From Klebsormidium nitens (Eukaryota; Plantae; Klebsormidiophyceae), in contig DF236976.1 of the NCBI GenBank assembly GCA_000708835.1, forward strand, positions 1 through 64,000: a DNA stretch of 64,000 bases, given 5' to 3'. Positions 24,496 through 51,900 of this stretch are shown piece by piece. The position numbers and the translations under genes were made by a program. The stretch's first letter is position 1. Each line of letters opens with the position of its first letter. The notes beneath the pieces were generated by a model that was given only the letters and a program-made list of their open reading frames with translations, had not been told where the DNA came from and did not search any database.

Positions 24496-27400
24496 ATGAT
24501 GGCTTCTGGCTTGGATTCCGTGTTGGAGCCGAGCACAAGCGGGGCTGGAATTGTGGCAATGGACACGGGTCTTTCTCATCAGAGATTTCCCTCTTCCAAA
24601 ATGAAAATAGACGAACTCTTCATTCAGTGGCTGTCGCTACCAGACTCTCAAAAGTTGGTAAGTGGTCAACCTGCTCAGTCGTCCCTATTTCGATGAATAT
24701 TCGATTTTGTGTGAAGCAGTCAGGGTGCTTATGCTTCAACAAATCTCACGGGCGAGGTTGTCCGAGATAGTCCATGAGATCAGAGCTCGTCACGGTTGAC
24801 TTTTATGATGATTTGCAGTTCCTGCAGAGCGACATTTAGCTCTATGTTTGAGGTAGGTGTTGGTCCTAGTAGCCAGCTCTTGCACCGTACAAATATCAGG
24901 ACAGGTTTTGAGCTTTTTGACTCTGGTTATATCTCTACAATCTTTGGGGTTGTCTATGGTGGAGGTTGAGTCTTAGCACAGACCGGAGGTTAGAGGCACC
25001 ATATATGTCCAATCTGTGATGTAATTCAATCCGAAGGGTTGGTGATTATTAGAGCCCCTACATCTTCAGCAATCCTTGTGCTTCTTTGTTCCGCGGAGGG
25101 TTCATTCTCAACAAATGTCTTCTCAACTATCTCGGGTCTGACCTGTGCAATGACACCTGTGTTTTATTGTAGATGTCAATTCCAGAGCACTTATATCGAG
25201 CGCACTTGATTAGGGTTCTCTCTTTTGGATACTGTCTGCCTTCCCAACTTTACTTATCTGGCCCTGCACCTATGGGGTTCAGATGTGCACAAGCGGTTTT
25301 GGCAAAACTATATCTCCTAGTGATCATTTCAAGGCATGGCATCTTTGCAACACTGAAAAAGAATAGAGGTACAAGCAACTTTTGCAAGCAGCTACGTTGG
25401 TCAGCTCTGCATCTAGTTTACCGCCAGAGCTTCAGGCGCTGCTGGTTTACCTCTTGTCTTTCGATTTGAGCAGGTGTTGTCCCTACTGGAGGATGCAAAA
25501 GCCGGCCTTCCTTTGGTTGGCCCATCCTCGAGCTCTTCCTTCAGTCCTGGAAGCTCCACCCCCCTCTCCCCGTCATCAGCGCAGGCCCTGTTTGCGGCTT
25601 CAACCACACCCCCTCTTTCTCCCAAGAGCTCTGCCGGCTCCCCGCTGTCGCCTAGGTCGCCTATGCGGAGGGCACCATTTGGACATGCAGGCAGCCCTCT
25701 GAAGAAAGCGAGCGAGCCCCTACAGGAACGAATCCCACAGGTGCAATCGTCTGACTGGCTGACCGCCACTGTCTCCACATCCCTTCGATGTTGCAGCAAT
25801 GTAACGGAAGATTAGGGTATGTATGTAGTCTATCTGGAGCAAACCCCTCTTTTAGCTGCAGTGAAGGCCACGATCCAAGCGCTCTGTTGAGGCAATTGAT
25901 CACGACAAGAAAAAGTCAGATATTGGTTGGTCACCAGTGTGTTCGGTAAATGTTGTTCCGCATCATGACCCTTGATCCTGCACACGCTCTTGCAGTTCTA
26001 TTTCCCGAAAGGTGCCCCCCTGACAGAGAAGCAGCAAGTGGAGTTGCAAGCAGAGATAGACGGCATCTGGATTCCTCATCCTGAGGGCCTTCCTCTCCAA
26101 GGTGGGGACCCGCCATTGCTGCATGTGGTCGGTATTCCTTTTCTCTGTTGGTGAATTATCTGCATCCATGAAGATTCGCCATCGTGGCTGGAAGGCAGGG
26201 CTTTCCCTCTGCAGTTACTAGTCGTTCTCAGGCACCTCTATCAACTTCTATGTTGGCGCTTTGATTGGTCTCACTGGTTGCGTCCTCGGGCCTTGTCCAG
26301 CGTTCATGGATGTCACCAAGAACGTGTGCCGCCTTCCCTCCTTCTTCAACGGCGTGCTCTTCAAAAAGCTCGAGAAAGAGGGCTCCAACGTGGTCACGAA
26401 GCAAGACTTCCTGCACTTCTGGGTGTCGGAGTCGTTGGTTGACGCCGACCAGAACACCCGGCTCTTTGCTGTCCTCAAGCAACCCGGAAAGAACCACCTC
26501 ACCCAGGTACAGCCTACCCCCGGTTATATCCGCTCAATCCATGGTTTGACATCCTTGAAAGTCGACACCGTCGATTCAGCACATCACGTCTGCCATCAAA
26601 TTTTGAGCTTGTCTTTAATGGTGCTTTATCTAATACGGAAGCCTCTGCTCGCCATTGCTCGATGTATTCTGCGTCTATGTCGAGCCTGTCTTTTGGCTTC
26701 GTCAGGACGACTTCAAGCCAGTGCTGCGGGAGCTTCTGGCGAGCCACCCGGGCCTCGAGTTCCTCCACGACACCCCCGAGTTCCAGGAGCGTTATGCGGA
26801 GACAGTCATCTATCGAATCTTCTACACCGTAAACCGCTCGGGGAGCGGGAACATTACGCTGCGGGAGCTCAAGAGAAGCAACCTGCTGGCGGCCATGCAG
26901 CTCGTGGACGTGGAGGAGGACATCAACAAGGTCTTGAAGTCAGTCATCGGACTTGCTCAGTGCCACCATGCTCAGTGCCACCATTCTTGTTTCTACCCGC
27001 AGTTACTTCTAAGACGAGACTGGCATTTCTTCTCGTTCTGCTACACTTGTGGTGCATGGTTCTTGAACAGCTGGGTTATGGTGCTGCATCATCGTTACGT
27101 AGGCCTGCAGCGTGCTTCAGATACGTTCTTGTTGCTACTGCACAATCAAGCTCTGGCCCGAGACCCTCTGCGTCGAATCCACTTTGAAGAGGTGCTTTCG
27201 TAGGCCAGCTCTGTAGTCCCTGCTCAGCGCATACCGGTTGAGCCGTGTTTAACCTTGGCGTTCATCCGGATGCAGATATTTCTCGTACGAGCACTTCTAC
27301 GTCATTTACTGCAAATTCTGGGAGCTGGACAGCGACCACGACTTCCTGATAGATAAAGAGGACTTGCTACGATACGGGAACCACGCACTGACGTACCGAA

Positions 27401-28781
27401 TAGTGGACCGGATCTTCGCACAGGTACTGTCACGCTGACTTTGTGCCTTGTCACGCGATTTTCCGAGGCTGATGTCAGCTTCGGTCCGGTCTGCCGTGCA
27501 CGGTTTGCCAACTGGACCCTCCGTTTCCATGACCATGACGACAGCTTCCGACTGGTATCAGCGAACTTTTTTTCCTGCTTTTGCGTGTCAAGCGGACCTG
27601 CATAGTCCCAGTTGCTGGACAGTTACTTCTCGATTCCCGTCCTGCCTTTCCAAGGGCGTCAAGACCACTTGCGTTGACCACAGTGAGTCCATCGTCTTTT
27701 GTAGAAGTAAGCAAAGACATGCACCCCCAAGTTTGAATCTTTTCCCGAGTCTCCCTATCTTTCTCCTGCGGTACCAAACGTCGCTCGACCTGTCGTTTCC
27801 TAAGCCGGCCTAACTTTGGTACAACGCTTCAAAGCCATACACGTGCGGCCTCCAAAGCCTCTCCTCTTGCAACTCCGTCCCCCAGGTCCCCCGGCGCTTC
27901 ACGAGCGGCGTGCCGGGCAAGATGAGCTACGAGGACTTTGTGTGGTTCATCCTGTCGGAGGAGGACAAGACGACGGAGCTGAGCCTGGAGTACTGGTTCA
28001 AGTGCGTGGACCTGGACTGCGACGGCCGGATCACGCCCAACGAGATGCAGTACTTCTACGAGGAGCAGCTGCACCGCATGGAGTGCATGGCGCAGGAGCC
28101 CGTGCTCTTTGAGGACATCGTCTGCCAGATGGCCGACATGATAAACCCAGAGGTGCGGATCCCCGCGGGACGGGGGCTCCGTTCATGAGTTCAGCTTGGA
28201 AATTGAACGTTGTGCAGAGCAGCGAAAGCCGGTTCGTTGGAAACGTTGATTACAAGGTGTATCTCCCTGTTGGCTCAGATGTCACAGTTTCTGATTGCTG
28301 GGGTCGTGTATTCTGTGGCCACAAAAAGCGTCTCAGGCCTTCTGATACAGTTTCGTGCCTTGTCATCTTACGTGGGGCCAATTTGATGTGCCGAGCATGT
28401 TCATGCTGGCTGCTTCTTTTGTAGTTTCTAACTCTTGGCACAGACACTTGTGATGGTTCTGATGGAGGCCTTTGGATTCAAGTCAAATGACGTGGTACTG
28501 TCGTTGTCTTGCAGGTGGAGGGCGTGTTGACATTGAGGGACTTGAAGCACTGCAAGCTGTCCGGAAACTTCTTCAACATCCTCTTCAACCTCAACAAGTT
28601 TGTAGCTTTCGAAACCCGGGACCCCTTCTTGATCCGACAAGAACGAGAAGACCCGACATTAACCGAATGGGATAGATTTGCACGGCAGGAGTACATACGG
28701 CTCTCCATGGAAGACGAGGGGGAGGAAACGTCGAATGGCAGCGCGGAAGTCTGGGACGAGTCGCTAGAGGCGCCTTTTTGA
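24496..28781 (+). CDS. Protein phosphatase 2A regulatory subunit B'' (PPP2R3 family, EF-hand; ~551 aa, 8 exons)
   Basis: Exons 24496-24657, 25474-25740, 25996-26101, 26301-26506, 26706-26938, 27276-27423, 27886-28152, 28515-28781 join in frame. Motifs [40 protein letters not shown]-hand DLDCDGRIT and C-terminal WDESLEAPF*. Confidence 0.95.
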
Positions 28782-29598: not shown

Positions 29599-32500
29599 TT
29601 ACCACTCATAGTACCATCCAGTATCCAGTGAGTGCACGAGGTCGCCGTCTGCTTTCGTTTGCCCAAACTGCCTATGCGCGGCCATTATCTCCCACACTAT
29701 GCGTGCCCCGCTCGCCGACCCCGCAAACACAGCATAATCCGCCTCCTCTGCCGCAAGTGTCAATTCTGCTACATAGTGTTGCATGATCTGGTTCCTCTGC
29801 GGGCATGGCACGTTCAGATGGCTTTGGTGCACCGTGATGGGGTCCAGTTCCACCAGAGGATTGTACATCACTTGCCGTTCCGAGTCCGTGAAGCCGAGAT
29901 CGGTCGCGTTTGCGGCCGCCTGCCGGAGAACGCTCGCGGTGTCGGTAAAGAGGAAGACGCTCGGCCAGTGGATGCCCCAGTCCGCCTCGAGCTTTTCCAC
30001 TGCCCTGCCGTAATCCCCCAGGTCCCGGAACCGGTGATGCTCGCGGAAGAAACCGTCGCCCCACCCCCTGCAAAGCGCCAGCTGACGTCAGCTTTGGTGC
30101 ATCACCAAACAAAGCCAAACCTACGACTTCGCGGTGTCCGAGGAGAAAGTCAAGGACGGACGAGGTTTCCGTTTAACCGGCAGACTGCATCACCTCCTCT
30201 GTCCGGATGCAGGAATACACCGACTGCTGACAAGCGCCAAGGCATCCCCCGACCTCGTTTCCTTCACGATTCGTAAGAGCGACAACTCCTCCAATGCGCG
30301 AGTGTCCGTCCAAGAGCAGACCGAGGCCATTTGATTCTTCCGTGCCCACAAACTTTCTGCTGATGTGCGAAGCAGGGATAGCCGGAATCAACACGAAATC
30401 TCGTTGGCGGACGCCTCACCTGTCCGTTCTCCTGACGTGCACAGCCACGGTGGGCTCTCTCCTGTCGGGCCACGCGCACTTGATTGCGTCAGTAATCTCG
30501 CGTACGCGCGCCTGCGGCCGCCACATCCACTGGGTCGTGATGGACCACAGCATGAAGTGCAGGTCCAAGAACGGGGCCCCGTGGACGTCGCCCCCGCCCT
30601 CCAGCCGCAGATTGCCTGAGCCAGAGTAACAAACACGGTAGAAACGGGGCCTCTGAATAATGGGCATCGTTGACAGAACCCATGGAAGGGGAACGTGGGC
30701 TCCAGTTTTCGTGTCGGACCCCCCATACTAGTTGGTCCTCTGTGCGCGAGCGCTCCTCAAAAGACTAGGGCTGCCACGTGTAATTCGTAATTCCCCATGA
30801 TAACGTAACCTCAATTGGTCCCCGGTTGACCGACCGATCGGACGATCCTAGGATCCTAACCGGGGGCTCGGCGCCTGACAGACGTCTAAGACCGAGACCC
30901 CCGGAAAGAGACAAGAGACCGGCTGACCAGGAAAGTTAAACCACTCTTCTCATTCGCGCGCTGAGGGTACTAAGCGGTGTGGGGGTCCAGAATGAAAACG
31001 GGGGTCCAGAATGAAAAATGGAGTCCACGTTCTCCTTCCACGGGTTCTGACAATAGGAGCCAGGGTCTGAGAAGGTGGTCGGAGATCATAGTCTGGTGGC
31101 TATTGGGGTAGATTAGACGACGGAGGGAGGTTTAGTATTCTTGCTCGGGCTTGCGTTTCAGCGATGCAAAATTACCGTAAGGCCAAACTCTAGAATGCAG
31201 AGTTTTTAACTCACAGTGCCAAACGTATGGCTGTCAATGATCCCGACTTCGTCAAGCTCTGGCTTCAACACCGGCTGAGAACGAGAACTTACTCACACTC
31301 CCTCGAGACTGCTTCATAGTGCTCACCTGCCACGATGAGATTCTCGAGGAAGGCCTCCCACCACGTGGGCTCCACCCACGACTCCCCCCGGTCGACAAAC
31401 CCGCTCGGCGTCGGGACGACCGTCTCCAGCCGAACGACCCGCTTCTGCGCCGCCTCCGCTGACGTCACCATTGCCCCCTGCCACGTCAGCGTGACCTCGG
31501 AGTCGCCCACGCTCGGGGCATCGTACTTGCAACCGGAGAGGGGCTCGAAGAGCGTTTCGAGCGTTTCAAGGACGCAGGCACCGCTATCGGACGGCTGCTG
31601 TGGAGCTTCCGAAGAATCGACGACGAGGGTGCGCCCGAGGGAGACCGCCAGGAGGAGTGCCATTTGATATGAGTGGAAGTTGAGGGCAACGCCTGCAGAA
31701 GAAAAGATCGGGAATTACAACAAAGAAGTGGCAGAAGGAATGTAGCTCAGAGCAGTACGACGAAGTAGTTCAGAGCAGTAGGAGAGTAGAGCCAAAGAGT
31801 GGAGGGCATGCAAAGGGCGGGCGTGAGAATCGAAGAACAAACGCTTGTTTGTTTGATTGTATGGAGGTGGACTCAATTTCGGTAGTAGGAAAAAGTACCA
31901 ATCGATGCCAAAGCAAGAAGTCCCTCAGGATCGCTCATGAACAATGAAAGAAGCATTAATCAACTGCCTTACAACATTGGCAGTGACTTACAACTACACA
32001 TAACAATTACAACAATTGTTCTACGGACTCGCGAGAGCCAGGCAATCAGATCTACTGACTGACTGACTCATTGACTGACTGACTGACTGACTTGACTAAC
32101 TGACTGCCCTTGATCAAGAAAGTGCACTGACCCACCTTGATTGTGCGGCCTGGTCATCAGCCACCGAGCATTTTCGCAGTCCTCTGGGAACTGCGTCCGA
32201 TCTAGTTCCTCGTACACCAACTTCTCGACCGTGTTGCTCCATCTCAGAGTGCCACCTGGCAGCCCGGGGCCCGCGCTCGCGCCCAGCGGGTTAACCAATC
32301 CACCCCCCGTGGTAGAGTGCACAACCGGCCCCAGTGGCCCGGTTTGCGTAACCCGCTTACGGGCGCTGATGACCTGGGCGGCTAACCTGCCTACGTTGGA
32401 CCGTGAGGAGATAATTGCGTAGTCGGACAGCCGTGAAAGGATGAGCGCGTTCGCTAGCGCGCGGTCCTCGGCGTGCCGGCGAGCCTCGGGCCCGGACCAG

Positions 32501-35500
32501 TCCTGGCCGCTCTCCGGACGTCCAAACAAATCCCCCGTCTCTAGTTCCTTACTCGCGCCAGCTTTCTGGAGAGGAGAATCTGAAGTTTCTACAGGCGGCT
32601 TGCTGTCGACGGCGTCGACTTGGCTCAGCTTTCGGCGAGACGCAGGAAAGCTTCTCAGCCTCGCATGATCAAACGGAGTCGCCATCTCTATTGCTGTTAT
32701 TAGACCGAGACCCTTCTTAGGTCCTTGAACTCTATCAATCAATTGGTGGCCGAGTGAGGAAAGTACTCGGCACAAGCGGACTAAGCTCCTACAAGTAACA
32801 GAGTCGTTGGAGCTCAGACTCCCACAATGTGTACCGCTAAACGCCTCTGACACTCTGTTGTACAAAGTAGAAAGTCCGCTTCTATTAACTTTGTCTCTCT
32901 GCCCTACCCCTGCATCAGACACCCCACTAACTGCACCGTTTCCAGGTCGGCTACTCGACGACCACAACTCTCTCCGACTTTCATCTCCGCCCGGTAAGCC
33001 TCCTCCGAGCTTCTGCCGTAGCCGCCTCTGCTTGCCAAAACCGCCCAGGGGGGTCCCCCGGCCTCTCAACCCCCTTCGAACGACGACGTCACTCTTGTCC
33101 GCCGCTAGCTGGTCGTAAAGGATGTTAGAGGCCGCGGCCACGCCGAGCGTGTCCGATTTCTCAATCAGCTCTTCTAAGAAAAAGTCCGAGTCGGTGATGA
33201 CGAAGGACGAATTCCAGGAGTGGCCCGCATTGTCGGCACCGGTTTTAAACGCCCACTGAAGCAAGACGAGAAGGAACTCTTCAGAGTTTGTTTCGTCTCC
33301 ACTTGTTGTAAAAGCAAGCTGCATCTACAGTGAATTGCCATCGCCGAGGATGGCATAAGCATTGCGGCCCAAACAAAGGGAAACAAACCAGCAGCTGTGC
33401 CAAGGACAGTTGCGAAGGGCAGTATCCAAGCTTATAGAGCATCTTGCAAGGAAGGGAAGCGCACAAACGCAGCAAAAATAAAGCAATGCTCAAGTCAGCC
33501 TCGGAAGACTTTTACACGAACGTTGCCAACCCCTGATCTGCTTGCAACAGTACCGAACGTTTCAGTCTGCCGGAGTGGACTAGACAAACACAAAAAGAAA
33601 GAAAGTAATCATTCCTTGTGCATTCCTCACCCGCAGATCCTTGATGAGTCGCCCCATCTTCTTCCCGTCGTACGCCAGCACGTCTACCTGGCCAAGGTCC
33701 CCAAACCTCTCCGGGCCCCCGCCATACCCGGTGCGCATCTCCAGGCCCAGAACGGGGTACTTCGTCCCCCCCTGCTGCGCTAAAATCGCCGCTGCCTGAT
33801 CCTCAATCCTCCCCACCGGCTTGAACATCCAGTCCGAGACAACGCTGAACACCATCGCTTCGATGTGTTCTGGGCTGGCTTGGCCCCCCCCCACGACCGT
33901 GACGTCGCCTGTGGCGGCAAGACGCTCCCACAGGGCCGAGAGCCACTCATGTTTGTACGGCTGTTCGTTGGGGTAGTCTGCACACGAGGGAGGACCTACG
34001 AAGTTATGACAAAAGAGCCGAACATGACGGAACTGCTTGTGCCCCATCGGTACTTCATTCGGAATGAATGCCTCCTGACATAATGCGATGTCGATACCTC
34101 AGTTTGCATCCAACCAGAGACTTGGTACTTAGAAACAGCTCGCAAGCTGACTTGCACAGCACAGATTGTATCAGCAAAGCTTTCCAGAAGAAGTTTCCCA
34201 CATTCGAAAGAAACTCTATCCCGCTTCCACCCCCGCACCCTCACAATACCCCGCAGAATACTTGCTGCGCACAAGATACTATCCAGCGGACACAACCCAA
34301 CTGAGCGGATGTCAAGAGCGACTCACGTGGTCCATACGGTATGAGCGTCAGCAACTGGTCTCCCCAGTCCCCTCTCACCACCTTCCCCATATCACGGTGC
34401 AGAAAGTCGCGCCCGTGTGTGTACTCATAAAATGCGTCCCCAAATCGGACTAGACGCTCCGGTTCATTGTATAGGGAACACTTCGTGAAAGGCTGGAAGT
34501 AACAGTGCAGGCTCTTGTCGCGACAGGTGGCATAAGGCAGCATGGGGCTGTCATGGATCGGAACGACTGTGTAGCCGAGCGAGGCGCCAAAGACGAGGAG
34601 CGCCAGGAAGTTCTGGTACTCGTACAGGACGTCTGGGGGAGGGACAACGAGCTTTTATTGAGTATCGGTTTCTCCGGACGGAGCGTGAACTGTAGACAAG
34701 ATCTCTCGAGATCGATGATGGTGACCTGCTTAATTCCTAATTTGGAGATGTTGAAAGAAGTTCTAGTGTGCTGACATTGATCACCTCTTATCAAATGATG
34801 ATCGGTACTACTTCTCACGAACTAAACGACCTCACAACCAACTACTGATTGAAAAGGCTTGACCACTGCTGGGGAGCCCTGCTGTTTGCAAACTGACTGC
34901 AGCTATCAGAGTTCGTAAAGGGCCTCTTAATGGGTAGCCACACGATGGTGACAAATCCGTACGCAGGGCCCAAAATCCCACCCGGCCAGGCGGCACTTCA
35001 GTTGTCACAACCACCGGTCCAATCTTGAACACGGAAGGGGGAGACTTCCAGTCTGTTGGAACTCCACCGACTTGCTACCGTACTCACGAACTTCGTTGGT
35101 CTGCATTGATCCAGTCCTACTCCAGCTAAAATCTGAGCAAGAGCACAATCAAACACAGGCCACCTTGGTGGCCTGAATTTGCCGTTTGAGGGCGACCAAA
35201 ATAACGGAGGCACTTGCTCTCAGACACCTACACATATGAGTTTAGGGTTTGGCAGAACTAAACCTCACCATCGCTCAGCTGCTGGATTGCTAGCCACTTG
35301 GTGGAGCTGCAGTTTTCAGGAAACTGCACCCTCACAATCTCCCCGACGATGACGTCCGCTGCCGCCTGAGTCCAGGTAATACTCCCTGCCTCCAGCTTCT
35401 TCGCATCCAACGGCACCGTCTGTACATCCCTGTACCACTCTGGACCGGAAGCGACATCGTTGGCCCCACATCCTGGCCCCGTGCACGTTAGGAGCTGCTT

Positions 35501-35623
35501 TACAGCGTTCTGGAGTAGCAAGAGCTCCTGAGGTTTCCTCGTTGTGCCATAGAAGGCTAGAAGAACGGCCCCGACCACGATCACCAGGGCCGTCGCCGCC
35601 CAACGAGAGCCGAATTTATTCAT
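29599..35623 (-). CDS. Double-domain FUT8/GT23-like glycosyltransferase, type II membrane protein (~1052 aa, 7 exons); 'GT-AB'
   Basis: Exons 35623-35269, 34632-34327, 33977-33631, 33255-32136, 31692-31327, 30615-30420, 30067-29599 total 3159 nt, open frame. N-terminal TM anchor. Domain A: QFPENCSSTKWL..GLEMRTG..FVITDS..LSDYAIISSRSNVGR. Domain B: QFPEDCENARWL..VHVRRTD..FLFTD..ADYAVF..SLDTGWYYEW*. Confidence 0.85.
30670..31053. mobile_element. Degenerate MITE/foldback insertion in intron 5 of the double-domain GT gene
   Basis: GACAGAACCCATGGAAGGGGAACGTGGGCTCCA (30672-30704) matches the reverse complement of 31019-31051 at 29/33. Similarity continues inward into a GGGGGTCCAGAATGAAAA unit that is doubled at the right end. 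No clean target-site duplication. Confidence 0.55.
32056..32105 (+). repeat. (TGAC)n tetranucleotide microsatellite near the 5' end of intron 4 of the double-domain GT gene
   Basis: About 12 imperfect TGAC units are directly visible. Confidence 0.9.
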
Positions 35624-36561: not shown

Positions 36562-38736
36562 ATGAACAGCCTGGGCCCACGGCAGCAATCAGTCGTCATT
36601 GTTGCGGTCACGGTGGTGCTGCTGGGCTTGACACTCGCGCTCACCTTCTCAGACTCCATCAAAGGGTACCGAGTACTAGACAGGCTAAAGCGGGCTGAGA
36701 TTGCTGGACTACTGGACCGGGTCTCAGTTCTTTCAGGCAATGCGGCAGATCGACCCACCCGTTCAGCTGATTCCAGTCTGATTGGGAGCGAAAATGATGA
36801 CCTTAAGTATGCAGAAGCTCCTGCAGCTCTGGACTACTCGTGGCTCAAGCGCCTGCCAGAGAAAGTGCCAATCGACCTAACCACACTCCAGGATGGTTCA
36901 ATTAGTTGGACCCAGGAGGCGGAGGATACAATCATTGCGGAGATCGAGAGGGTGCAGTTTCCGACTTCGTGCAGCAAAGCAAAATGGCTGGCGGTGCCGA
37001 TGCACATGGGAGGTAGGTGCTCGCAACTACAGCTCAACCCTACACCTTTCTTGCTTTTGTATGTTCGCAAGGGCAAACGTTTTGGGCGTTCCGTGCTGCT
37101 CCTTGGTGGTACATGCCAGAACTTTGGTGACGGAAAGTCAATCCAACTTTGATATGAGTTGCTGCTCTCCCTTTGCAGGCCTCTTGTCGGACGTGCACCA
37201 GTTCCAGGCCTCTCTTCTGTTCGGTGTCAGCTTTGGCTACACAGTCGTCCCCCTCCCCAACTCGCACCTTGTCGCTTTCGCCGGCTGCACCGAAAAAAGT
37301 CTCCACTGCTTCTTCCAGCCCTACACAAACTGCTCGTTCTACGATAGCCCCCATCACGTGGCTTTCTACAAGGAAGCGTCCATTGGGGCTCCGCGGTACC
37401 CGGCGGGGGCCCGGAGGGGCGCGTTTGCGGAGCGAAACCTCCCGGCAAAGATGGCAAGCGGGGCACTCGGCGACCTGGTTGCGGTGCCCATCTGGCCACG
37501 TGAGCTACGAACGAGTCAGCTTATCTGACTTCAAGCCATGCTAAGAATAACATGAAGCCGTCAGCTGACTGGTAAAATTAGTGGAGCATCTCAGTGTTCT
37601 TCACAAGCATGTTTAGCCGTTTTGGGTGGCCCCGGACTTTGCATCAAGGCGGGACTTAGCGCACTATTGGCTTTGGACGCGGATACTGCCTTCATTTCTT
37701 GATGTCAACAGGTCAACCATTTGATCACTTCACATGTAAAACTTCTGGCATTTCGGCCGCTCAGAGGCAATCGCTTGAGATCCAGCAGATGGTACGAATG
37801 CAATTGGTACCGTCGTGAAAAGCTGATCATCATTACTTTGCAGCAACTGGCTCATCAATATGTTGTGTTGTACAAATCCTGAGATCGAGTAGCTCGAAGT
37901 ACACCTTAACAAGAGCAACAAAATGTTAAAACCTGGAGTGTCTGACACCGTATCAAGCGTCAAGAATCTTGCAAGGGCTCCGATCTTCTTCCACCAACAT
38001 AAAACATTCATCCCACTCGTTTGCAGACTATCGCGGAGCGCCGTGCAATGTGAAGTGGTTCGACGCGCTGTTTGAGCGCCTTCGCGCCAGTGGCAGCATC
38101 CAGATCCACGGTCAAGAGAGTTACGCGCATAAGGAGTTCATGCTGTACAGCGTCCTTTCGAAATGGACCATGCGTCCAATAAAGCGGATAGAACACCTGG
38201 CAAACAGATTAGCAGCCGAGTTTCCGGACGTCCGAGGCCCGGTGCTGGGTTTGCACGTCCGGCAAACGGACAAGACTAAAGAGGATCCCTTCTACGTGGC
38301 AAACGGGCGGTATCGGACAGCAGATGAGCTGTTTGAGGGGGTCAAGCAGCTTGCGGACGCCCGAACACCCCGGTGGAAGTCCGCCTTTCTAATGTCCGAC
38401 TCCCAAGCGTTCCTCAATGCGGTTGTGGCCAACCCGGGCTCTTTGCACCTGGGTCCCGACGTGGACATTCTTTACAACCGGTTGCTGAACCGGTCAGTGA
38501 TGGAGACCGGGGGCCACAACCTGGTGCGGGGGCGGGAGGCGACAGAGCAGACAGACCACTTCGTAGCCGGGCTGTATGTGATGTCAAAGATGGCGGACTA
38601 TGCGATAGCGACGTTCTCGTCGAACGTGGGCAGGGCGATAGTGGAACTGCTGGCAGCGGAGCGCCGCGTCACGCAGGTCAGTCAGGTCGGGCCGCTCGCG
38701 GACGGAGTGGACGAAGCCTGGGGAACGAATCTTTGA
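36562..38736 (+). CDS. FUT8/GT23-like glycosyltransferase, subtype A, type II membrane protein (~493 aa, 3 exons); 'GT-A'
   Basis: Exons 36562-37012, 37179-37499, 38027-38736 total 1482 nt. TM anchor VVIVAVTVVLLGLTLALTF. QFPTSCSKAKWL and FUT8-like motifs I LGLHVRQTDK, II AFLMSDS and III ADYAIATFSSNVGR. Confidence 0.88.
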
Positions 38737-42988: not shown

Positions 42989-45900
42989 ATGGACGAGGGA
43001 AAGTTGCCGGGTACAATGTCTCCAGAGGCCAGGGTATCTGCTGCAAAGGATAAGTCAGGCAGCAAAGGTAGCAAATCTCCAACCAAGGTTGGGAGCCCAA
43101 AAGCAAGTCCTGCTCAAGCGAAGAAGGTTTCACAAGATGCTCATGTGAAGACAGGAGCCGATGAAAGCACCTTTCAGGATCGCTGTCAGGTGCTTGAGGA
43201 GCATCTAACAAAAGAGAGGCTGGCAAAGGCTCAGGTGAGTTGCCTGCATGGGGGTTTCCCTCTTACGGACCAATTCATGGGCATGGTTCACCTAGATCAC
43301 TTAGGTTTCAATCCTTCGATGATAGATTAGGAAGGTCCCTGGATGTTGGGCCAGTGTTGAAGGGTTTCTTTCCAGGTTGCATCCTGCGAGTATCTTATGA
43401 GAGTCTAGAAAAAGCAGCAATTGCATCAGAAGTAGGTAAGTGGCTTCAACCAGACACTCCAATCAAGACGTGGCGCATGCTTCTGTCAGATGAAAGGTTG
43501 ACAATTCCGTTGCTGACCTATGAATCTGTATCCTTAGTTGGTTGAGCAAAGGAAGGAGAAGGACGCCACCATTGCAAAACTGGAGGCGGCTGAGAAGAAA
43601 GCAATTGGAAAATGGGAGGAGGAGAAACGCCGAGCAGAGAATGCTGCGGAGAGGGAGCGGAAAGCAAAGCAGGAGCATGATGAGATGAAGGTGGGTTCGT
43701 AAATTTATTGTAGATACATTCGAGAAGTGGCGCAGGATGTGATTCCCTGAAAGGTGGTACTTTTATCTCCTGAGTCCTGAGCCATGTTGGATGTGGTTGA
43801 TGCCTCTTGTGGTGAAATTGTGAATGCTGTCTAGATGTGGAGATGTTTTGAAAGCTGTGACTGCTCAATTCCTTTAGGCAGCCTTGCTCTGACCGGTTCA
43901 GACTGAGGGCTCCAAATGGTTTGGTGCTTGTGCTCACCTCTGACAGTCTTTGGCGTTGGCACATGCTATCATCTAATTGCTTTCTGATCAGCATTACAGC
44001 TTCCCCCCAAGCGAGTGCATGAATCTTACGAGATTTTCTTCAATGCGCAGGGGAAAATCAGTGAGTACGATGCAAAGATAAAGCAGGTCCAGGAAGATGC
44101 AGAGCAAGAGAGGGAGGCGTTGAAAAAGGCGCTCTTGGAGGAGAGGCTTGCCAAGGAAAAGCTTGAAGCAGTAAGGGATGCTGGAATCGAGAAGGACCAG
44201 AAGGGAAGCGCGGAAGTCGAAGCACTGGTTGCGAAGATTCGGACTTTGGAGTCTGCAAATGCAGACCTGGTGCAAGAGCTACGGAAAGGTCTTGAGGGGA
44301 GCGATCAGGGCAAGGATGTTTCAGGAGCAGTGTCTGGAGAGGTGGAAAGGGTCAGGGAAGAGCTGGAGAGAAAGTTTGCGGGGGACAAGGGACACTGGGA
44401 AGAAAAGGCGAAGAAACAGAGGGAAGTGAGCAACAATGTGATTAGGAAGCTGAGTTCAGAGAAAGAGGCAGAAGCGCAGCGTGCCGAGGTGGCCCAGAAG
44501 CGTGTTGAGGAACTAGAGAAGGAGAACAAGAAGCTGGTGCATGACAACAAGAAACTGCACACCAAGAGTGCGGAAGCCGCCGGCATGGAGTCATCGCTGA
44601 CGTTGACATCAGCAGCATTGGATGCCAGACTGGACAAGGCAGAGGCAAAGAACAGAGCCCTTGTGAAGGAGAGGGAGGAGTTGCTCCAGAAGGTGTCAAG
44701 TCTTGAGAAAGTCAGTCAGGAGATGGAACAGGGGCTGGCGGAGGAGAGGAGTGGAAAGGCGGCTGCTTTGCGAGAGAAGCAAGAGGCTTTTGAGAAGCTG
44801 GTTAACGTGGAGAAACGCCTGGTGGAGCGCGAAAGCGAAATGAAGAAGCTGCGGGCCAAGGGTGCGGAGGCGGCCGCTATGGAGTCGACGCTGACTCTGA
44901 CATCAGCGGCCTTGGATGCCGGCCTCGAAAAGGCAGATGCCAAGAACAGGGCGCTTCTCAAGGAGAAGGACGAGTTGCTTGAGAAGTTGTCGGGTCTGAA
45001 GCAAGCCAGGGCAGAGGCGGAGGAGAGGCTGGCTGACGAGCGGAATGGAAAGGTGGCTGCTTTGAAGGAGAAGGATGATGCGCTCGGGAAGCTGGCTGAG
45101 GTTGAGACACGTCTGGTGGAGTGCGCGAGGGAACTCGAACGGGTCAGTATCGAAAACGGGGAGCTCAAGGACTCCACAGAGAAAATGTCAGCGGAAGTAG
45201 GGGAGTTAAAGGCAGAGCGGACTGCCAGGGAGGAGCGAAACGCGTTGCTTGTCAAGTCGCAAGACTCGCTCCAGGCTGAGCGACAACGGCTGGAAGCAGA
45301 GGTTGGAGAGCTTAGGGAATCAGTGGTGGCTCTAACGACAGAGATAGAGACCTTGAGGCGAGAGAATGTCAGCGCGCTCGAGCAGAGCACCAGCCTGGGA
45401 AAGGCGAAAGAAGCTGTAGAGGCTGAAAAGGAACAGTTGCGAGAAGAGGTAAAGGGGCTAGCGCTGGAGCAGAAGAAGTTGACGGCGCAGCTACAAGTGC
45501 TGAAAGAGGAGAAACAAGTGGTGGTGGAGCAGGGGACACGGCATGCCAAGATGAAGGAGGCGCTTGAGGTGGAGAAGGAGCAACTAGGGGCGGAACTGGC
45601 GCAACTGCTGGAGAGGATGCAAGGGCCGAAGCCGCAGGGCGGGCGTAAGCAGGAGGCGCGTGAGGCGCTCAAGAGCGTGGCAGCAAAGGTGGATGAGATT
45701 CATGAGAAGGTAAGAGGGGTCTGCCTTCTCATGACGTACTTGTTTTTTCTAGGATGTCAGTCATGCCAGTCCGAGGAACCATTCTATAGTCATGCGAATA
45801 GGTAGCGAGAAACGTTGTTGCCAGGCCCTATCAATGCTTTGAAAAGACAATCCGAGATTTTCGAGCCTTTGTTGGAGTTACAACTTCCTGGAAGGCCATC

Positions 45901-48900
45901 GTAGACCGGGTCTCACTGGAGTGCTCAGCGCCGTAAGTTTCCAACCCTCAGTAAGATTTGGCCTCAATTCTTGATTTTGGGCCTCACTTCCTGTCGGCCT
46001 TACTCTTTGATGTTGGCCTCAGTTTCGCAAATGCAAGGTTTGTAACTTTCGTTTTCTTCTGCTGTCCAGTTGGTCGACCTGGAGCACCGCTCCGAGCTCC
46101 TTGCCCAGGCGGAGGAGGAACGGGAGGCAGCCGTGCGAGCCAGTGCACACAAAGAAGCCGAGATTGGCAGGCTGCGGGAGGAAGTGCTGGTAAGGGTACT
46201 GGTCCCTCTTACTAACTTGGGTATGCTACCAAGTGATGGCCCACCAAGACCATCTGTCGTCGGGATCTTTTCTTGTTCCCAAGATTGACTATCTGTGGTG
46301 ACTTGGTTGAATCGGAAAAAGGGACCGGGCATTGTAGACCCTTTCGGGCCGATGCTTTTTTGGTGTTTTGGCCCGACCTCAGGCCACGCTTGGGTTCTGG
46401 TTCAGGTGTTGATTTGAGTTCTATAGCTAATACAACAATGCCTCAGATATTCACCAGGACAGCTTGAAGGTCTTGCTGTTTTCGTAGCAGAGGGATCTAG
46501 GACGTGGAACGAATATCAATATGGTCAAACCTCATAACTCCGCTTATAACCATACTCTGCCTTGTGGCTTTCGCTCACAGAAGCTCACGTCTTGAACCCC
46601 TTTAATCTCTGACTAAGAATTGTTTACACCTCGAAATCCCCTCTACTGCAGACGCTCGAGGGACGGGCCGTCGAGGCTGAGGCCAAGGTGTCCGAGCTCC
46701 AGGAGGCGCTTCAGGCCGCCCAGGCGCAGCTGGCGCAGATCACGGGCTTCTCCCGAGCGAAGGACGAGGAGATTCGGGGGCTGTGGAAGCGCGTGCAAGA
46801 AGCTGCGCGCAACCAGGAGGAGCATGAGGCCCTGCGGCAGAAAGTGGCGCAGCAGATGGAGGACATCCTGGCAGCGGAAGCGCGGGGGCGGGAGAGCGAG
46901 GCGCACGCAAAAGACGCAGAGGTGGCGGCGCGGGAGCAGGAGGAGAAGATGTCGCAGGTACGGCGGAGCGTGCCTTTCCTTTTTCCATTTTTAACCCGCA
47001 ATCATTGAGCGGTGAAGTAAAGATGGAGTGGGATCTTTGGTTGTGAGTGTCGAAGGAGAATCGAATCCATCTCGGAGTGAGCCTTCTCTCCGTGTCAAGG
47101 CAAGAGTGAGGGAAAAGGGTCCGTCAAAGAACCTGACTAGTTTGAATTCAGTGCGTGTGACCGTCCACAAGAGGTCTCGTTTCACTCCGTTCTGAATTTT
47201 GACCTTTTTCTTTCTACTCCGCAGAAGGGTGTCAGTCAGACGCCATAGTCCATGAATTTTTTTTCAAGTTGTCCTACATAAGGAGCGAAAGTGGAAACTG
47301 CGAAGGGTGTTTCTTTCTGCCATCGTACTCGAGAAGGATTCATGGCCGCTGCTTCTCATAGAAAGAGAAGGGAGTCTCCTTCTGCAAAACAGCGGTGTGA
47401 TTCGATTCAAGTTTGGGTGAATGCCAACGTGCGAGGTGCTGAGATTGGAGTCTTCGACCACGCGAATTGATCTGTCCTTTTGCCATGCAGGTAGAGGAGG
47501 CACTCAAGGAGAGGGAAGAGGATCTTACGGGCTTGAAGGAAGAGCTTCGATCGAAAGAGGCGGACCTCGAGGCACTGCAGCAGCAGCTTCGGGCGCAGAA
47601 GAGCGAGGGCAATGAGGCGCGGAAAGAAAAGACAGCGCTTCAGTCGGAATTGCACCGAAGCGAGGAGAGCGGGAAGGAGGAGAGGGAGAGAAGCGAAAGC
47701 CTAGAAGCGGAGCTGCAGAAAGAGAAGCGGAGGACAGATGACCTGACTGCTGAGGTGTCTGCTGCAAGGACGCGGGAAGAAGAGTTCGCGAAGCGCCTGG
47801 TAGAGTTGGAGAAAGAGAAGGTGGAGCTCCATGAAAGGCTGCGATCGGAGGCTGACGCCCGCGTGCGAGAGCTCGCGGAGAAACTGGCAGCTGCGGAGGC
47901 GGACTTGGCCCAGAAACTGTCCGGAACGGAAGCGGAGTGGGCGCAAAAGCTTTCCGACGCGGAGGCGGCAGCGGCAGAGCGGCTCGCGGCTGCACAAGAA
48001 GAGCTGCGGACGGTGAGGGCGGATTTACAGCGAGCGAAGCAGGAATTGATGGAGCAGAAGGAGCGGTGGGAGCGGGAGAAGTGTGAACAGGCGGAGCGGC
48101 ACGTGGAGGAACGAGAGCGGGTCGCACGGGAGCGTGCGCGGGCGGTGGAGCACCTGGAGAAGGAGGTGGAAGAGAGCGGGGGGGCGATCCAGAAGCTGCG
48201 GGAGGGGATCACTCGACGGGACGTCGAGATCAAAGACCTGCAGACGGAGCTGTTGGAAGCGCGAGAGGGTCTGGAGAAAGCGGTGCGGGTGAAAGAGGAG
48301 GAGATGAAAAATGAGAGGGCGCAGGCTGCGGCGGTTCGAGAGCGCTTGACGGAAGAGTTGGCAAGCAAGGACGCCGAATTGAAGGAGCTAAGGAGAGAGG
48401 TTCAGGAGATACAGGTGACGGTGTCCCGGCACAAAGAGGAGGACCTGGCATCGCCGAAGGGTGTTAAAGAAATCTCAATGGCTCAGGCCGGGCCGCAGGA
48501 TGACGTCAGCAGGAGGAAGGAAGAGCTTAGGTTGATAGAAAGGGTAGTGCAATCGAAGGAGGCCTCGCCGTCGAGAGTCAAAGCGTGGGCCCGGGTAAGC
48601 GATCCGGGGCTGTCGGGGCTTCTAGCGGAAGAAAAAAGGGCCTTACCTGAGGGGGCGGGCAAGGCAGAGGCCAGGGTGAAGCCGCCCGCCCCCAGGGTGC
48701 GGGTGAGTTTCTTAGGGCGGCGAGAGGGCAGCCCGGGTCTGGCCGAGGAGGAGTGTGCGACGCCGATCCAGGAGAAGTTTGACGTCGAGGGAGACGAGAA
48801 AACGGCGCTGCAGGAACGGCTTCGAGAAAAGGAAGAAGCGCTTGAGGTGGAAGTGGTGAGAACGCATTTCTGTGTCTTTGCTAGCCGTTCTCGTTTGGGT

Positions 48901-51900
48901 CAGAGCTTTCTTGTGTCCGTGATCAAATCGTGCTGTTTCGTGATTACAGACTTTGCCTGAGTTGTATTCACTTTGAGCTGGCGTAGTCCAGGCTCAATCT
49001 TCTGTTTCGACTTCACGAAACTTGCTGCGTATCCTGGGGGGACAACCGCAGGCTTGATTGCTTTTTCTAGATCTCGCGAACCCACTATCCGTTTTCTTCC
49101 GCGTCCGAGTATGCAGGCACTAATGCTGACAAAGACGGACTTCGATTCGTTCTTCGAGACGCTTTCTCGAAGCGTTTTCTGGCTGCACGGAACGGCCACC
49201 TTTTTGAGCAACTTGTCAGTCAAGGTGTGTTTCTGAAAGATGTCACGCGCCCTGTTTGTGCAGTCCCGTCGCCAGAAGATCGAGAAGCAGCTGGCCGACG
49301 CCAATAGCTTGTTGGCGCTGCGGACCGCTGAGGCGTCCCGCCTTGAGAACACCCGGAGACACGTGGCAGCCCTAGAGGAGCAGGTGTGCACGCTGCAGCA
49401 GGAGCTCGCGGACGAGACGGCACGTGTCAGCGAGCTGACGGTCCACGTGGCAGACCGAGAGGTAGAGCTGGCGCGGCTGAAGGACGTCAGCTTGGGTGGG
49501 CTGAGCAAGGAGCCAGCTTACAGCAACGGAAGCAGAAAGGCGAAGAGAGGGTCAGGCGAAGAGGGGCTTGCGAGCAAACGGGATGCAGGACGCGCTGATG
49601 CGGAGATCCGGGCTGGCAGCAGGAAGTCGCTAGAAGGCAGCACGACGGCTGAACCCGCAGAGAACGGCGCAGGACAGTCCGAGGACTGGTTGCAGCGGGA
49701 ACTGCGGGAGGTGCGGGGCCACCTGGAACTAGAGCGGGCGCACGCGGAGGCGGCCGGAAAGGAGCTGCACGAGAGGCTGGCGGAGCGGGAGCGCGACCTG
49801 GGCGAGCGCACGCAGGAGCTGCGGAACTTGGAGCAGCAGCTAGAGGACGAGGAGGGGGACAAGCGGCGCATCCTCAGCCAGGTGGGCGGCGGGGGGCTGG
49901 CCGGAAGATCGTGGTTCTGTGTCCTGCGTCCGTAGGTTTATCCCAACAGTCAGGCGCTTATGTGTCCGGTGTTCCTTTTCTTCAACCTCCAAATTGTGTG
50001 AATAAGACGCGAAGGTCAAAACTCAATATACGTGGTTCCTTTCACCTGGCCTTGCATTTGTGTGCACGGAGGCGGGTTGGACCTTGAGATGGGTTCGTTT
50101 CTGGCGACAGAAATAGTCCTCCTTGAGTAGCAGGAGCCATCGTTTTTGGCGTCGATAAAGGAGAGTTTCGTATTTAACATTGTCCAACTAGAAAACTCTG
50201 CTTTTCGGCCGTCCGTCCGTTCCGTCCGAAAAAAGTGATAAGAGAAGTATGCTCCTCCAATTGTTTTGGCGCGACCTCCTGTTTCATTACATGTCTTTGG
50301 GTCCATCTCGAATGTTCCTAGGGATTGAACTATGACGAGACGTGGAGCCGCCTTTGTCCCATTAAAACTCTTTATTGCTGTCACCACTTCTAACAACGTT
50401 CGACCGTTTCCTGCCGTCAGATGGACTACCAGCGGACCCAGATCGACCACCTGCAACAGCAGCTGTACGGCAAGAAGAAGAGCATGGACCGCCTCCTCAC
50501 CCGCCTCTCCGACAACGAAAGAACCCTCGAGCAGCTGCGCATCTCCCCGGGCCAGTCCCCCCGCTCTAGTTTCTCCTCCAACGGAGACCGGAATAGCTCC
50601 CCCGGGCACTCCCCTTCGGGCACCGGAGAGCGGATCTCCTCGCCCAGGCTGCCGCTCACCACGAGCGTTACCGATCTGGAGAGACTGCGAGCGGAAGCCG
50701 AGTCGGAACACCGGGCGGAGTTGGTGCAGCGACTGGAGCAAGGCGGGGTTCTCGAGCGGAAGGAATTGGAAGAGGAGGTGCCGGCGTTGTTCAGCCAGTG
50801 CAAGGCGCTCCAGGCCGCGCTGGAGGAGAGTAAGAAGCGCATTGCGGAACTGCGCGAGCAAGCGCTGACGTTCCAGGGCGAGACGGACGCGCGGGATGCG
50901 GTGATCGAGGCGCTGCGGGAAGAACTAGACGTGGTGAAAGTGCGGGTGGAGTCCGACGCCGGGAAGCTGCGAGAAGAGGCCGCGGCGAGGGAGGGTGAGC
51001 TGGCGCGGAGCGTCGCGGATCTGAAAGCACGGGTGGCGGAGAAGGAGAAGCTACTGGACGAGGGAGACAGCAAGTTTGAGGAGCTGCGGGGGCAGATCGC
51101 GGGGGGAGAGGAGAGGATTCGGACGTTGCGGGGCGAGGTGGGTACGATCCGGGGGCAACTGTCCGAAAGGGAGGACTACTTGGAAAGGCTGGAGGGAGAG
51201 ATTGGGGAACAGGCGGCGATGCTGGTGCGGATGCAGGACGACATCGCGGAGAAAGAGCGACAGCTGGCGGAGTGGGAGGGGCTGGCGGAGGCCCACGAAA
51301 CGGAAGTCGAGTTGCTGCGGAGGAAAGTCGAGAGTCTGAAGTCCACGGAAGCGCCCTCTGTGGAAGCGGACGACGAGGGGGTGCCACGTCGCGGCCTGCA
51401 AGAGCAGCCAGACGTGCCGGAAGGGCACGTGGCGTCAGGAGGCAGTCTGGAGGAGCAACTAGAGGCGGCAGTCGAACGGCAGAAGCGGATGAGCCAGGAG
51501 CTGAGCGCGGAACGGCGGGAGTGGGAGTCGCGGCTCGTGCGGATGAAGCACGAACGGGAGGGGTTGGAGAAGCAGGTTGTGGAAGAGCGGAAGCTCAAGA
51601 ATCAGGCGCTGAAAAGCGTCCAGGTTAAGCTGCGGCGGTTCCAGTTCGAGCTGGGGGAGGTGCGCAAGGAGAGGGCGGCGCTGCACGAGAGGGTTCAGGG
51701 TTTGGCCCGCGTGGCGCGCGAGGGCGAGGAGCGGGTTTGGGCCGCGGTTGAGGAGAGGCTGAATGGACAGTCCGTCGGCGTCGTACTGAGGTCGCCGAGG
51801 CAAGGGTGGCTGGGGAAGCTGACGGAGTCGACCAAGGGGAAGAGGGAAGTGCTGGCTCTAGATTATAAGGCGATCGGGAGGGCAGCCTCCCGAGACGTTG

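Follow-up and report, generated by a model that had tools for sequence, protein, structure and literature searches.

AB, a fused two-domain GT23-like gene of Klebsormidium nitens with a probable pseudo-glycosyltransferase as its N-terminal half

Introduction

What is the function of a gene that joins two glycosyltransferase-like domains in one reading frame while single-domain copies of each persist next door? The question is posed by a locus of Klebsormidium nitens, situated in a window of 64,000 nucleotides (contig DF236976.1 of assembly GCA_000708835.1, positions 1 to 64,000 of the forward strand). There, the gene AB, consisting of an upstream domain A and a downstream domain B, is adjoined by the stand-alone paralogues A' on the plus strand and B' on the minus strand, which bears out the first-pass annotation in its reading of A, B and AB forms at one locus. 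That annotation further proposed that A and B likely act in sequence on one acceptor or form a heterodimer, and that the locus is a candidate for an undescribed system. The analysis presented here upholds the gene and revises its interpretation. With a probability of about 0.6, judged from sequence comparison and from analogy with B3GLCT, AB encodes a pseudo-glycosyltransferase that is anchored in the membrane and joined in one chain to a GT23-like transferase with an active site.

A single spliced transcript spans both domains

The A-to-B junction of AB is located within exon 4, in an open reading frame (32068..33324, minus strand) that runs stop-free from SNVGRLAAQVISARKRVTQTGPLGP via a Gly/Pro stretch to GTLRWSNTVEKLVYEELDRTQFPEDC. 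When the seven RNA-defined exons are joined, the resulting 3159 nt constitute the single open frame that had been predicted, encoding 1052 amino acids with one stop, at its end. All six exon joints are GT..AG on the minus strand in spliced contigs derived from RNA (four runs from four studies), and one such contig (X13 record 1, 3316 nt) extends across the full set of seven exons and has 0 mismatches, contradicting the objection that two separate mRNAs meet at the junction. Exon 4 itself is matched by RNA contigs of four independent studies with 0 mismatches and 0 gaps. An extra, B-only transcript from an internal start may also be made, a possibility with which the contigs are compatible. The claim that no stop, intron or second transmembrane (TM) segment separates A from B is thus upheld by the reading frame, the RNA contigs and hydropathy. 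The sole hydrophobic window other than the N-terminal anchor, aa 126-145, was considered as a second TM and rejected, being a core element conserved in every family member.

That AB is an artefact, in which misassembly or reading-frame read-through merged two adjacent genes, has a negligible probability and nothing was found in its favour. The junction contains neither a stop, nor intergenic DNA, nor a second TM; it recurs in three related genomes; and this conservation, together with the RNA contigs, already refutes both the artefact and the earlier worry about misassembly. The fusion is genuine, and it is both transcribed and conserved, well past chance expectation.

In the related genomes L001, L002 and L006, the complete seven-exon AB is likewise accompanied by A' and B', making the three-gene cluster syntenic. 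A' and AB are arranged head-to-head, their ATGs 938 bp apart. The predicted gene models give A' a TM at aa 7-33 and an intact donor loop, HVRQTDK, and give B' a TM at aa 12-34, a stem of about 100 aa and an intact HIRRTDK. Introns 1-2 of A' coincide in position and phase with introns 1-2 of AB, and introns 1-3 of B' match AB introns 4-6.

Table 1. Coordinates of the AB locus within the window
Feature	Position	Strand	Basis or remark
AB fusion gene, coding sequence (ATG to stop)	29599..35623	-	spliced RNA contigs, 4 runs; open frame and GT..AG introns verified
AB exons 1-7	35269-35623, 34327-34632, 33631-33977, 32136-33255, 31327-31692, 30420-30615, 29599-30067	-	
AB transmembrane anchor, aa 9-25, N-terminal, single (type II topology)	35549..35599	-	Kyte-Doolittle scan, peak 2.16
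Domain A, aa 76-646, GT23-like, degenerate donor loop (introns 1-3 included)	32326..35398	-	hhalign, residue losses
Domain A degenerate motif I, EMRTGYGGGPERF	33703..33741	-	alignments anchored on preceding identical PVLGL; FUT8 mapping
Domain A insert, G/S/R/L-rich, 185 aa (aa 396-580), between motifs II and III	32524..33078	-	alignment, composition
Invariant Gly/Pro-rich linker, 24 aa, VVHSTTGGGLVNPLGASAGPGLPG, in exon 4	32254..32325	-	dN/dS 0.02
Domain B, aa 671-1052, GT23-like (introns 4-6 included)	29602..32253	-	alignments, residue comparison
Domain B motif I, HVRRTDR, orthologue-invariant; final base in exon 7	30420..30439	-	alignment, spliced frame
A', predicted A-type paralogue, 493 aa	36562..38736	+	homology and GT-AG sites
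A' exons	36562-37012, 37179-37499, 38027-38736	+	
B', predicted B-type paralogue, about 523 aa	39429..42308	-	homology and GT-AG sites
B' exons	42308-41792, 41531-~41138, 40773-40575, 39890-39429	-	intron 2 donor site uncertain

Both domains belong to one GT23/FUT8-like family

Domains A and B are distant paralogues within a single GT23/FUT8-like family. Independent, disjoint sets of A-type and B-type sequences align with each other over 362 columns at an hhalign E of 1e-58, a result that does not bear out the notion of two different enzymes. The connection to FUT8 is provided by the A2 family profile of the catalytic half, which contains B rows as well as A-type ones; against the PDB it retrieves FUT8 at E 1.6e-7 with motifs I-III aligned, followed by a next match at E 0.29. 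A B-only profile ranks FUT8 top but not significantly (E 1.2), and the B type is tied to FUT8 via the A type, through their mutual alignment. Single-sequence PDB searches also ranked FUT8 first, below significance. In Pfam, the gathering cut-off of FUT8_N_cat (PF19745, 27.6 bits) was not reached: the last exon of A' came closest at 24.1 bits (1.8e-5) and AB exon 6 scored 14.1 bits, in a scan of AB, A' and B' that used exon pieces only and so lowered the scores. Full-length liverwort homologues scored 0-19 bits against the same profile, and for one homologue, from Marchantia paleacea, there is a precomputed PF19745 match.

Structure predictions are consistent with this assignment. Foldseek, queried with an AF2 model of A' exon 3 (pLDDT 71), returned FUT8 at the top (3.5e-6), then POFUT1 and NodZ, and the model of a Marchantia homologue (pLDDT 77) superimposes on FUT8 with a Z of 20.7 and an rmsd of 3.6 over 291 aa, as against Z 14.1 for AtFUT1 and 13.8 for NodZ. 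In these two models, the predicted architecture is the FUT8-like fold with its open-sheet and Rossmann domains. In FUT8, the pyrophosphate is bound by R365, K369 and S469 and the guanosine by H363, while E373 serves as the base, and each of the substitutions R365A, K369A and E373A inactivates the enzyme (PMC7033129). Equivalents of the donor-loop residues H363, R365, D368, K369 and E373 are present in both A' (HVRQTDK..ED) and B' (HIRRTDK..ED).

Catalytic residues are lost asymmetrically

Domain A, itself a close match to the A-type set (hhalign E 5.6e-54), has parted with the donor loop. Where the family consensus reads HVRQTDKxxEDPF, corresponding to FUT8 H363-F376, its orthologues read EMRTGYG..PE or QMQTRFG..PE. 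The equivalents of H363, D368 and K369 are absent from all of them, and that of R365 is also gone in L002 and L006. Eight of the 15 family-invariant charged, His or Trp residues are lost from domain A, including H157, H421, H435, E464, D486 and W489, and six are kept; what it retains includes an acidic side chain where FUT8 has E373, the Asp of motif II, and motif III as SNVGR. The stem branch leading to domain A has a length of 1.5 versus 0.56 for A'. Purifying selection on the core of domain A is strong (dN/dS 0.05-0.2), and the rewritten loop, GGPERF, is conserved among orthologues. Relative to this core, the 185-aa insert is fast-evolving (dN/dS 0.4-0.54), and in the alignment it is confined to domain A of AB, being found in no other family member. 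Taken from these residue losses, domain A is a probable pseudo-glycosyltransferase, though its rewritten and conserved loop could instead signify a new ligand or activity.

Domain B, which unlike B' lacks both a TM and a stem, keeps 13 of the 15 family-invariant residues and shows one K-to-R change in addition. Its donor loop reads HVRRTDR..GD, with the substitution at the K369 equivalent, its motif II is FLFTDTA and its motif III is altered to GSASGAR. Among orthologues, invariance extends to five motif I residues (H, R, R, T and D), to the acidic residue at the base position, to the Asp of motif II and the Arg of motif III, and to the C-terminal SLDxxW, and the domain evolves at a dN/dS of 0.13-0.17. 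Its R893 and D900 correspond to FUT8 R365 and E373. Catalytic activity is not assured, however, since domain B departs from the family at nine of 27 near-invariant columns, has Ala for S469 and Arg for K369.

The most constrained stretch of the AB protein is neither domain but the linker between them. Among orthologues from related genomes, its 24 codons differ by 12-13 synonymous changes versus a single non-synonymous one, giving a dN/dS of about 0.02 at a dS of 1.0-1.2, and the junction is nearly invariant across five sequences from these genomes.

Proposed origin and function

The shared intron positions, together with the absence from domain B of the TM and stem of B', suggest how AB may have arisen. 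An A-type gene, shorn of its stop and of the LDxxW tail at its C-terminal end, would have had its last exon joined in frame to the first exon of a downstream B-type gene, from which about 133 aa, comprising the cytosolic tail, TM and stem, were missing. Domain A would subsequently have lost its mobile donor-binding and catalytic loop and gained the disordered insert, all the while staying under strong purifying selection. The product would be a type II membrane protein of about 115 kDa plus glycans, presumably Golgi-resident, in which domain B is most likely the sole catalytic centre, a putative metal-independent inverting transferase with GDP-fucose as its probable donor. Domain A may provide a stem anchored in the membrane, a scaffold and/or a module that binds the acceptor, against which the invariant linker would hold domain B.

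Several other readings of the same protein deserve consideration. A bifunctional AB, with both domains active in sequence on the same acceptor in the manner of two-domain polysaccharide polymerases, would sit well with the strong purifying selection on both domains, with the motifs II and III and acidic base position that domain A retains, and with the intact single-domain A' and B' alongside. Yet the loss from domain A of its donor loop and of invariant polar residues makes two sequential active sites unlikely, as does its long stem branch; R365A and K369A each abolish FUT8 activity fully (PMC7033129), and the sequential action put forward in the first-pass annotation is improbable for these reasons. 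At the opposite extreme, AB might be a lectin-like or structural protein composed of two decayed GT23-like folds and devoid of transferase activity, an idea encouraged by the near-invariant columns that domain B has changed, S469 and K369 among them; most of these changes are conservative, however, and domain B keeps the orthologue-invariant motif residues listed above, leaving this reading somewhat more improbable than a bifunctional AB.

Comparably slim are the prospects of a cleaved precursor, whose linker would be recognised in the secretory pathway so that B is released in soluble form from an A that stays in the membrane, the two perhaps remaining associated. Such extreme constraint is unusual in a flexible Gly/Pro tether, and domain B lacks its own anchor. 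The linker contains no recognised protease motif, however, and a structured interdomain contact explains its invariance equally well. Kex2- or furin-like cleavage at the dibasic ARKRV just upstream was considered and ruled out, since in every family member this motif falls within the last helix. By Rosetta-stone logic, the fusion also makes a physical association of A-type with B-type proteins possible. A bolder and rather doubtful extension would have A' and B' form a heterodimer of which AB is the hard-wired version, the dead domain A and the linker shaping an acceptor cleft for a processive or template-holding fucosyltransferase; its product would be a wall or mucilage polymer containing fucose, so far undescribed, of Klebsormidium-type algae and of liverworts, and its family one passed over in surveys of plant glycosyltransferases. 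The fusion of a pseudo-glycosyltransferase to a single active transferase is preferred over all of these.

Distribution and significance

In the databases, the A type is most closely related to uncharacterised single-domain proteins of liverworts and Spirogloea (for example from Marchantia, MPTK1_1g06770/06780, Riccia and Calypogeia). These are about 490-540 aa long, comprise a TM, a stem and one domain with an intact HVRQTDK..EDPY, and are frequently encoded by adjacent gene pairs; in contrast to AB, none is a fusion. As to the same fusion elsewhere, which the first-pass annotation had suggested seeking, three related genomes share AB, whereas a profile search run exhaustively against 1.84 billion representatives returned eight matches and no second fusion among them. 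A word search with the A+B alignment produced liverwort single-domain proteins only, a B-only word search produced only ORFs of the same lineage and no B-type relative beyond it, and two metagenome scans for the fusion produced no matches. No mention of GT23 was found in a Marchantia glycosyltransferase survey, nor in the literature together with Klebsormidium.

Together with AB, these relatives point to a FUT8-like family of streptophyte algae and liverworts that has so far gone unrecognised. Within it, AB provides a transcript-backed and evolutionarily retained case of a glycosyltransferase duplicate predicted to have turned into a partner domain that no longer catalyses, the unfused A' and B' being available next door for comparison. 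The product of the family could inform the evolution of cell walls and glycans near the origin of land plants, and A, B, AB, A' and B' are all directly testable as constructs.

Comparison with known systems

The nearest characterised relatives are FUT8 and NodZ, the alpha-1,6-fucosyltransferases of CAZy GT23, whose motifs HVRxTDK, xxSD/TD and SSxVxR are recognisable in the AB family and which, like it, are type II membrane proteins. The identity to FUT8 is about 15-22%, the AB family has no SH3 domain, and the equivalent of FUT8 D410 is Ser or Thr throughout. Unlike FUT8, AB consists of two fused copies, the first with a destroyed donor loop. Brown-algal GT23 proteins, candidate fucan synthases (Mazeas et al. 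2024, PMC11468063) with proposed fucosylation targets other than N-glycan cores (PMC11468063), resemble the AB family in being divergent, SH3-less, multi-copy algal genes. They belong to stramenopiles rather than streptophytes, however, their donor site is reported as fully conserved and no two-domain form is mentioned (PMC11468063); brown-algal proteins were absent from the AB-family matches of the exhaustive profile search and the A+B word search. AB also differs from bifunctional two-domain polymerases, in which both sites are intact, domain A having lost its pyrophosphate- and guanosine-binding residues.

The closest architectural parallel is B3GLCT, which, like GLT25D1/COLGALT1, carries an extra, inactive N-terminal glycosyltransferase copy (PMC13597200; PMC12987934); in B3GLCT, this copy is essential for substrate or acceptor binding (PMC13597200). 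Domain A conforms to this type as a conserved, homologous extra domain with a vestigial site (E 5.6e-54, dN/dS 0.05-0.2), and in both proteins a diverged N-terminal duplicate of the fold precedes a C-terminal catalytic domain, predicted as such in AB. Given this precedent for a pseudo-glycosyltransferase joined to a glycosyltransferase, AB does not amount to a system of a new type, contrary to what was first suggested. The fold nevertheless differs: B3GLCT and GLT25D1 are animal ER enzymes of GT-A fold, whereas the predicted fold of AB is of the GT-B-type fucosyltransferase kind. Unlike in either of these enzymes, moreover, the two halves of AB are ancient paralogues, A-type and B-type, that persist as separate neighbour genes.

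The fusion gene and its transcript

The AB fusion gene is carried by a eukaryotic window (GC ~52%, multi-exon genes) in whose 64 kb no tRNA genes were found. A minus-strand ORF, 33324..32068, runs stop-free from the C-terminal motif of the first domain, SNVGRLAAQVISARKRVTQTGPLGP, via a Gly/Pro stretch into GTLRWSNTVEKLVYEELDRTQFPEDC, so that the uninterrupted passage from A to B described in the first-pass annotation holds throughout. The AB stretch is present in 20 public runs, 16 of which carry 54-73% of its words, approximately the exon share, and the contigs of these runs are spliced. Six splice joints, every one GT..AG on the minus strand, are the same in four of four runs from four studies, and the RNA contigs of these runs match the exons with no mismatches and no gaps. 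A single 3316-nt contig (record 1 of X13, one run's contig set) covers all seven exons. Joined, these give 3159 nt with one stop, at the end, encoding 1052 aa; the annotation's single-frame spliced model is identical in its exon sum. The transcript evidence consists of contigs, with which an additional internal start would also be compatible.

In most runs the transcript breaks between exons 5 and 6, leaving two contigs, because of an intron-5-retention branch, whose contigs are of low depth, about 1/10 of that of the exon contigs (30589-31355). Loose contig ends occur in all four runs at 31000-31053 (intron 5) and 34215-34246 (intron 2), and one run has a depth jump at 34040-34239; these suggest short repeated elements within the AB introns, common to other transcribed loci.

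Coordinates of the AB exons and the neighbouring EF-hand gene
Feature	Position	Strand	Evidence
AB exon 1	35269-35623	-	spliced RNA contigs, GT-AG-consistent
AB exon 2	34327-34632	-	spliced RNA contigs, GT-AG-consistent
AB exon 3	33631-33977	-	spliced RNA contigs, GT-AG-consistent
AB exon 4	32136-33255	-	spliced RNA contigs, GT-AG-consistent
AB exon 5	31327-31692	-	spliced RNA contigs, GT-AG-consistent
AB exon 6	30420-30615	-	spliced RNA contigs, GT-AG-consistent
AB exon 7	29599-30067	-	spliced RNA contigs, GT-AG-consistent
EF-hand gene, multi-exon	26261-28781	+	Pfam EF-hand_13 at 5e-30; EF-hand_7

Two subtypes of one family

Pfam yields only sub-threshold matches, to FUT8_N_cat; profile and structure comparisons give stronger evidence. 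A profile of the family's catalytic half (alignment A2) has FUT8 as its sole match in the PDB (E 1.6e-7, aligned across GT23 motifs I-III). An AlphaFold model of the last exon of A', the stand-alone A-type paralogue (pLDDT 71), retrieves FUT8 on top (3.5e-6), followed by POFUT1, NodZ and POFUT2. The full-length model of the Marchantia homologue P0014 (pLDDT 77) superposes on FUT8 along 291 residues (model 99-520, FUT8 165-500) at Z 20.7, with much lower scores for AtFUT1 (14.1), NodZ (13.8) and POFUT1 (13.1). Compared profile against profile, A-type and B-type domains from disjoint sets prove to be homologues along their entire length (E 1e-58, 362 columns), and the front domain of the fusion, AB-A, is homologous to both sets (5.6e-54 and 7.9e-26, respectively). 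A and B are therefore subtypes within a single SH3-less GT23-like family rather than two different enzymes.

Origin of the fusion

Searching the window by tblastn with AB exon pieces located an A-type paralogue at ~36.5-38.7 kb (+) and a B-type paralogue, B', at ~41.9-39.4 kb (-), confirming that stand-alone forms lie beside AB; A and B pieces match each other more weakly. Both paralogues are models predicted from homology and GT-AG sites (A', 493 aa; B', ~523 aa). Introns 1-2 of A' equal AB introns 1-2 in position and phase, and introns 1-3 of B' coincide with AB introns 4-6. In front of GTLTWSAEAED..., which aligns with GTLRWSNTVEK... of AB, B' carries a TM of its own (aa 12-34) and a stem of ~100 aa. 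The A-type C-terminal end reads ...GPxxxSLDxxWxxx; in AB this tail breaks off at GPVVHS, and the linker stands instead. Exon 4 of AB is therefore a composite: the terminal exon from an A gene (without tail and stop), ~20 new residues, and the opening exon from a B gene (without tail, TM and stem). An unrooted maximum-likelihood tree, in which long branches meet, places the rear domain AB-B together with B' (100/99) and AB-A together with A' (82/80); a stem branch of 1.5 leads to AB-A and one of 0.56 to A'.

Among A-type liverwort homologues, adjacent gene pairs occur in Marchantia (P0014/P0018, MPTK1_1g06770/06780) and Riccia (P0009/P0016, R1sor_026630/026629). Tandem arrays are therefore common in the family, and are raw material for such fusions.

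Divergent fates of the two donor loops

In FUT8, guanosine is bound by His363 and the pyrophosphate by Arg365, Lys369 and Ser469, and Glu373 acts as catalytic base; these residues sit on the mobile beta6-alpha8 loop or close to it (PMC7033129; also PMC11468063); R365A, K369A and E373A are inactive (PMC7033129). The donor loops were aligned by anchoring on the upstream PVLGL/PVIGV.

Donor loops of FUT8 and the family
Protein	Loop
FUT8	HVRRTDKVGTE
A'	HVRQTDKTKED
Liverworts	H[VI]RQ[TS]DKxxED
B'	HIRRTDKEVED
AB-B (invariant)	HVRRTDRGWGD
AB-A, window and L001	EMRTGY[GR]GGPE
AB-A, L002 and L006	QMQTRFGGGPE

Across A', B' and 12 liverwort proteins, 27 columns are >=95% identical, 15 of them charged, His or Trp. 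AB-B retains 13 of these 15, plus a K->R change; AB-A retains six, plus a D->E change, and carries a 10-residue insertion directly after its loop. AB-B departs from the canon in that the S469 equivalent is Ala (GSASGAR), with R471Q and P480D, and its catalytic activity is for this reason rated likely rather than certain. In AB-A the motif II Asp and SNVGR are still present, as is an acidic residue in place of the catalytic base, and the rewritten GGPERF is itself conserved; this is consistent with a fold that has been kept and a pocket that has changed. Partial degeneration of the loop (MPVREGNK for HVRQTDK) is seen as well in the single-domain P0005 of Spirogloea muscicola, whose branch is very long (2.0), so donor-loop loss is not limited to the fusion.

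Conservation and distribution

A word search with the exon-4 ORF returned four ORF calls, on genomic contigs. The related loci come from one SRA run (L001), another project (L003-5) and one JGI sample (L002 and L006), and are syntenic with the window, with the same EF-hand gene downstream. L001, L002 and L006 each hold all seven AB exons and a divergent A' upstream, with B' also present beyond A' in L002 and L006; the EF-hand gene, tail-to-tail with AB, is the same neighbour in all three, so synteny is conserved. Elsewhere in the window, 44015-52358 (+), a strongly skewed tract (G>C, A>T) with GC up to 61%, contains three long ORFs (596, 497 and 645 aa) with only weak, coiled-coil-type Pfam matches (ATG16, Fez1), probably all part of a single large gene for a low-complexity or coiled-coil protein; an ORF at 60033-60743 (-) with an SF3a60/Prp9 C-terminal match (1.7e-7) is probably one exon of the gene for splicing factor 3a subunit 3.

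Within exon 4 the junction is nearly invariant, and the mid-exon is only ~30% identical. Against distant orthologues, the 24-codon linker has 12-13 synonymous codon differences and one non-synonymous. By Nei-Gojobori, comparing the window with L002 and L006, dN/dS is 0.05-0.2 for the A core, 0.13-0.14 for domain B and 0.02 for the linker (at dS 1.0-1.2); for the A insert (aa 396-580), where L001 and L002 allowed an estimate, it is 0.4-0.54. By these measures the fusion is old compared with these species, is translated in the frame given here, and has both halves maintained.

The fusion that the first-pass annotation suggested seeking in other algae has orthologues in L001, L002 and L006, and no further fusion came up among 1.84 billion representatives or the 19 matches of an A+B alignment search. 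The former, an exhaustive profile search, gave eight matches: the two ORF calls, the others being proteins with a single domain from Spirogloea muscicola, Riccia and Calypogeia. The latter gave liverwort proteins or Logan contigs in every case, several of them adjacent gene pairs such as that of Marchantia. A B-only search found no B-type match outside ORFs of the same lineage, and two metagenome scans found no match; because every one of these searches is limited by length or by word, absence elsewhere is weak evidence. No literature pairing GT23 with Klebsormidium was found, and neither GT23 nor FUT8 is mentioned in a glycosyltransferase survey of Marchantia. For the GT23s of brown algae a role as fucan synthases is proposed, and the paper mentions no two-domain form (PMC11468063).

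A proposed mechanism and its precedents

The only clear TM of AB lies at aa 9-25, in agreement with the claim that there is no second one. AB would thus be a type II membrane protein with two lumenal modules: a conserved, catalytically degenerate GT23-like module bearing a disordered G/S/R-rich loop, and, joined to it by an invariant linker, one GT23-like transferase, probably active and anchored through A. By family resemblance, the donor would be GDP-fucose, and acceptor and Golgi location are likewise presumed.

Mechanistically, the nearest precedents for AB are B3GLCT and GLT25D1. In GLT25D1, catalysis does not reside in the N-lobe (PMC12987934). In B3GLCT, as proposed for AB, an inactive N-terminal GT copy is joined to a catalytic one; there the inactive copy, derived from the catalytic copy, forms a cleft with it and is essential for acceptor binding (PMC13597200).
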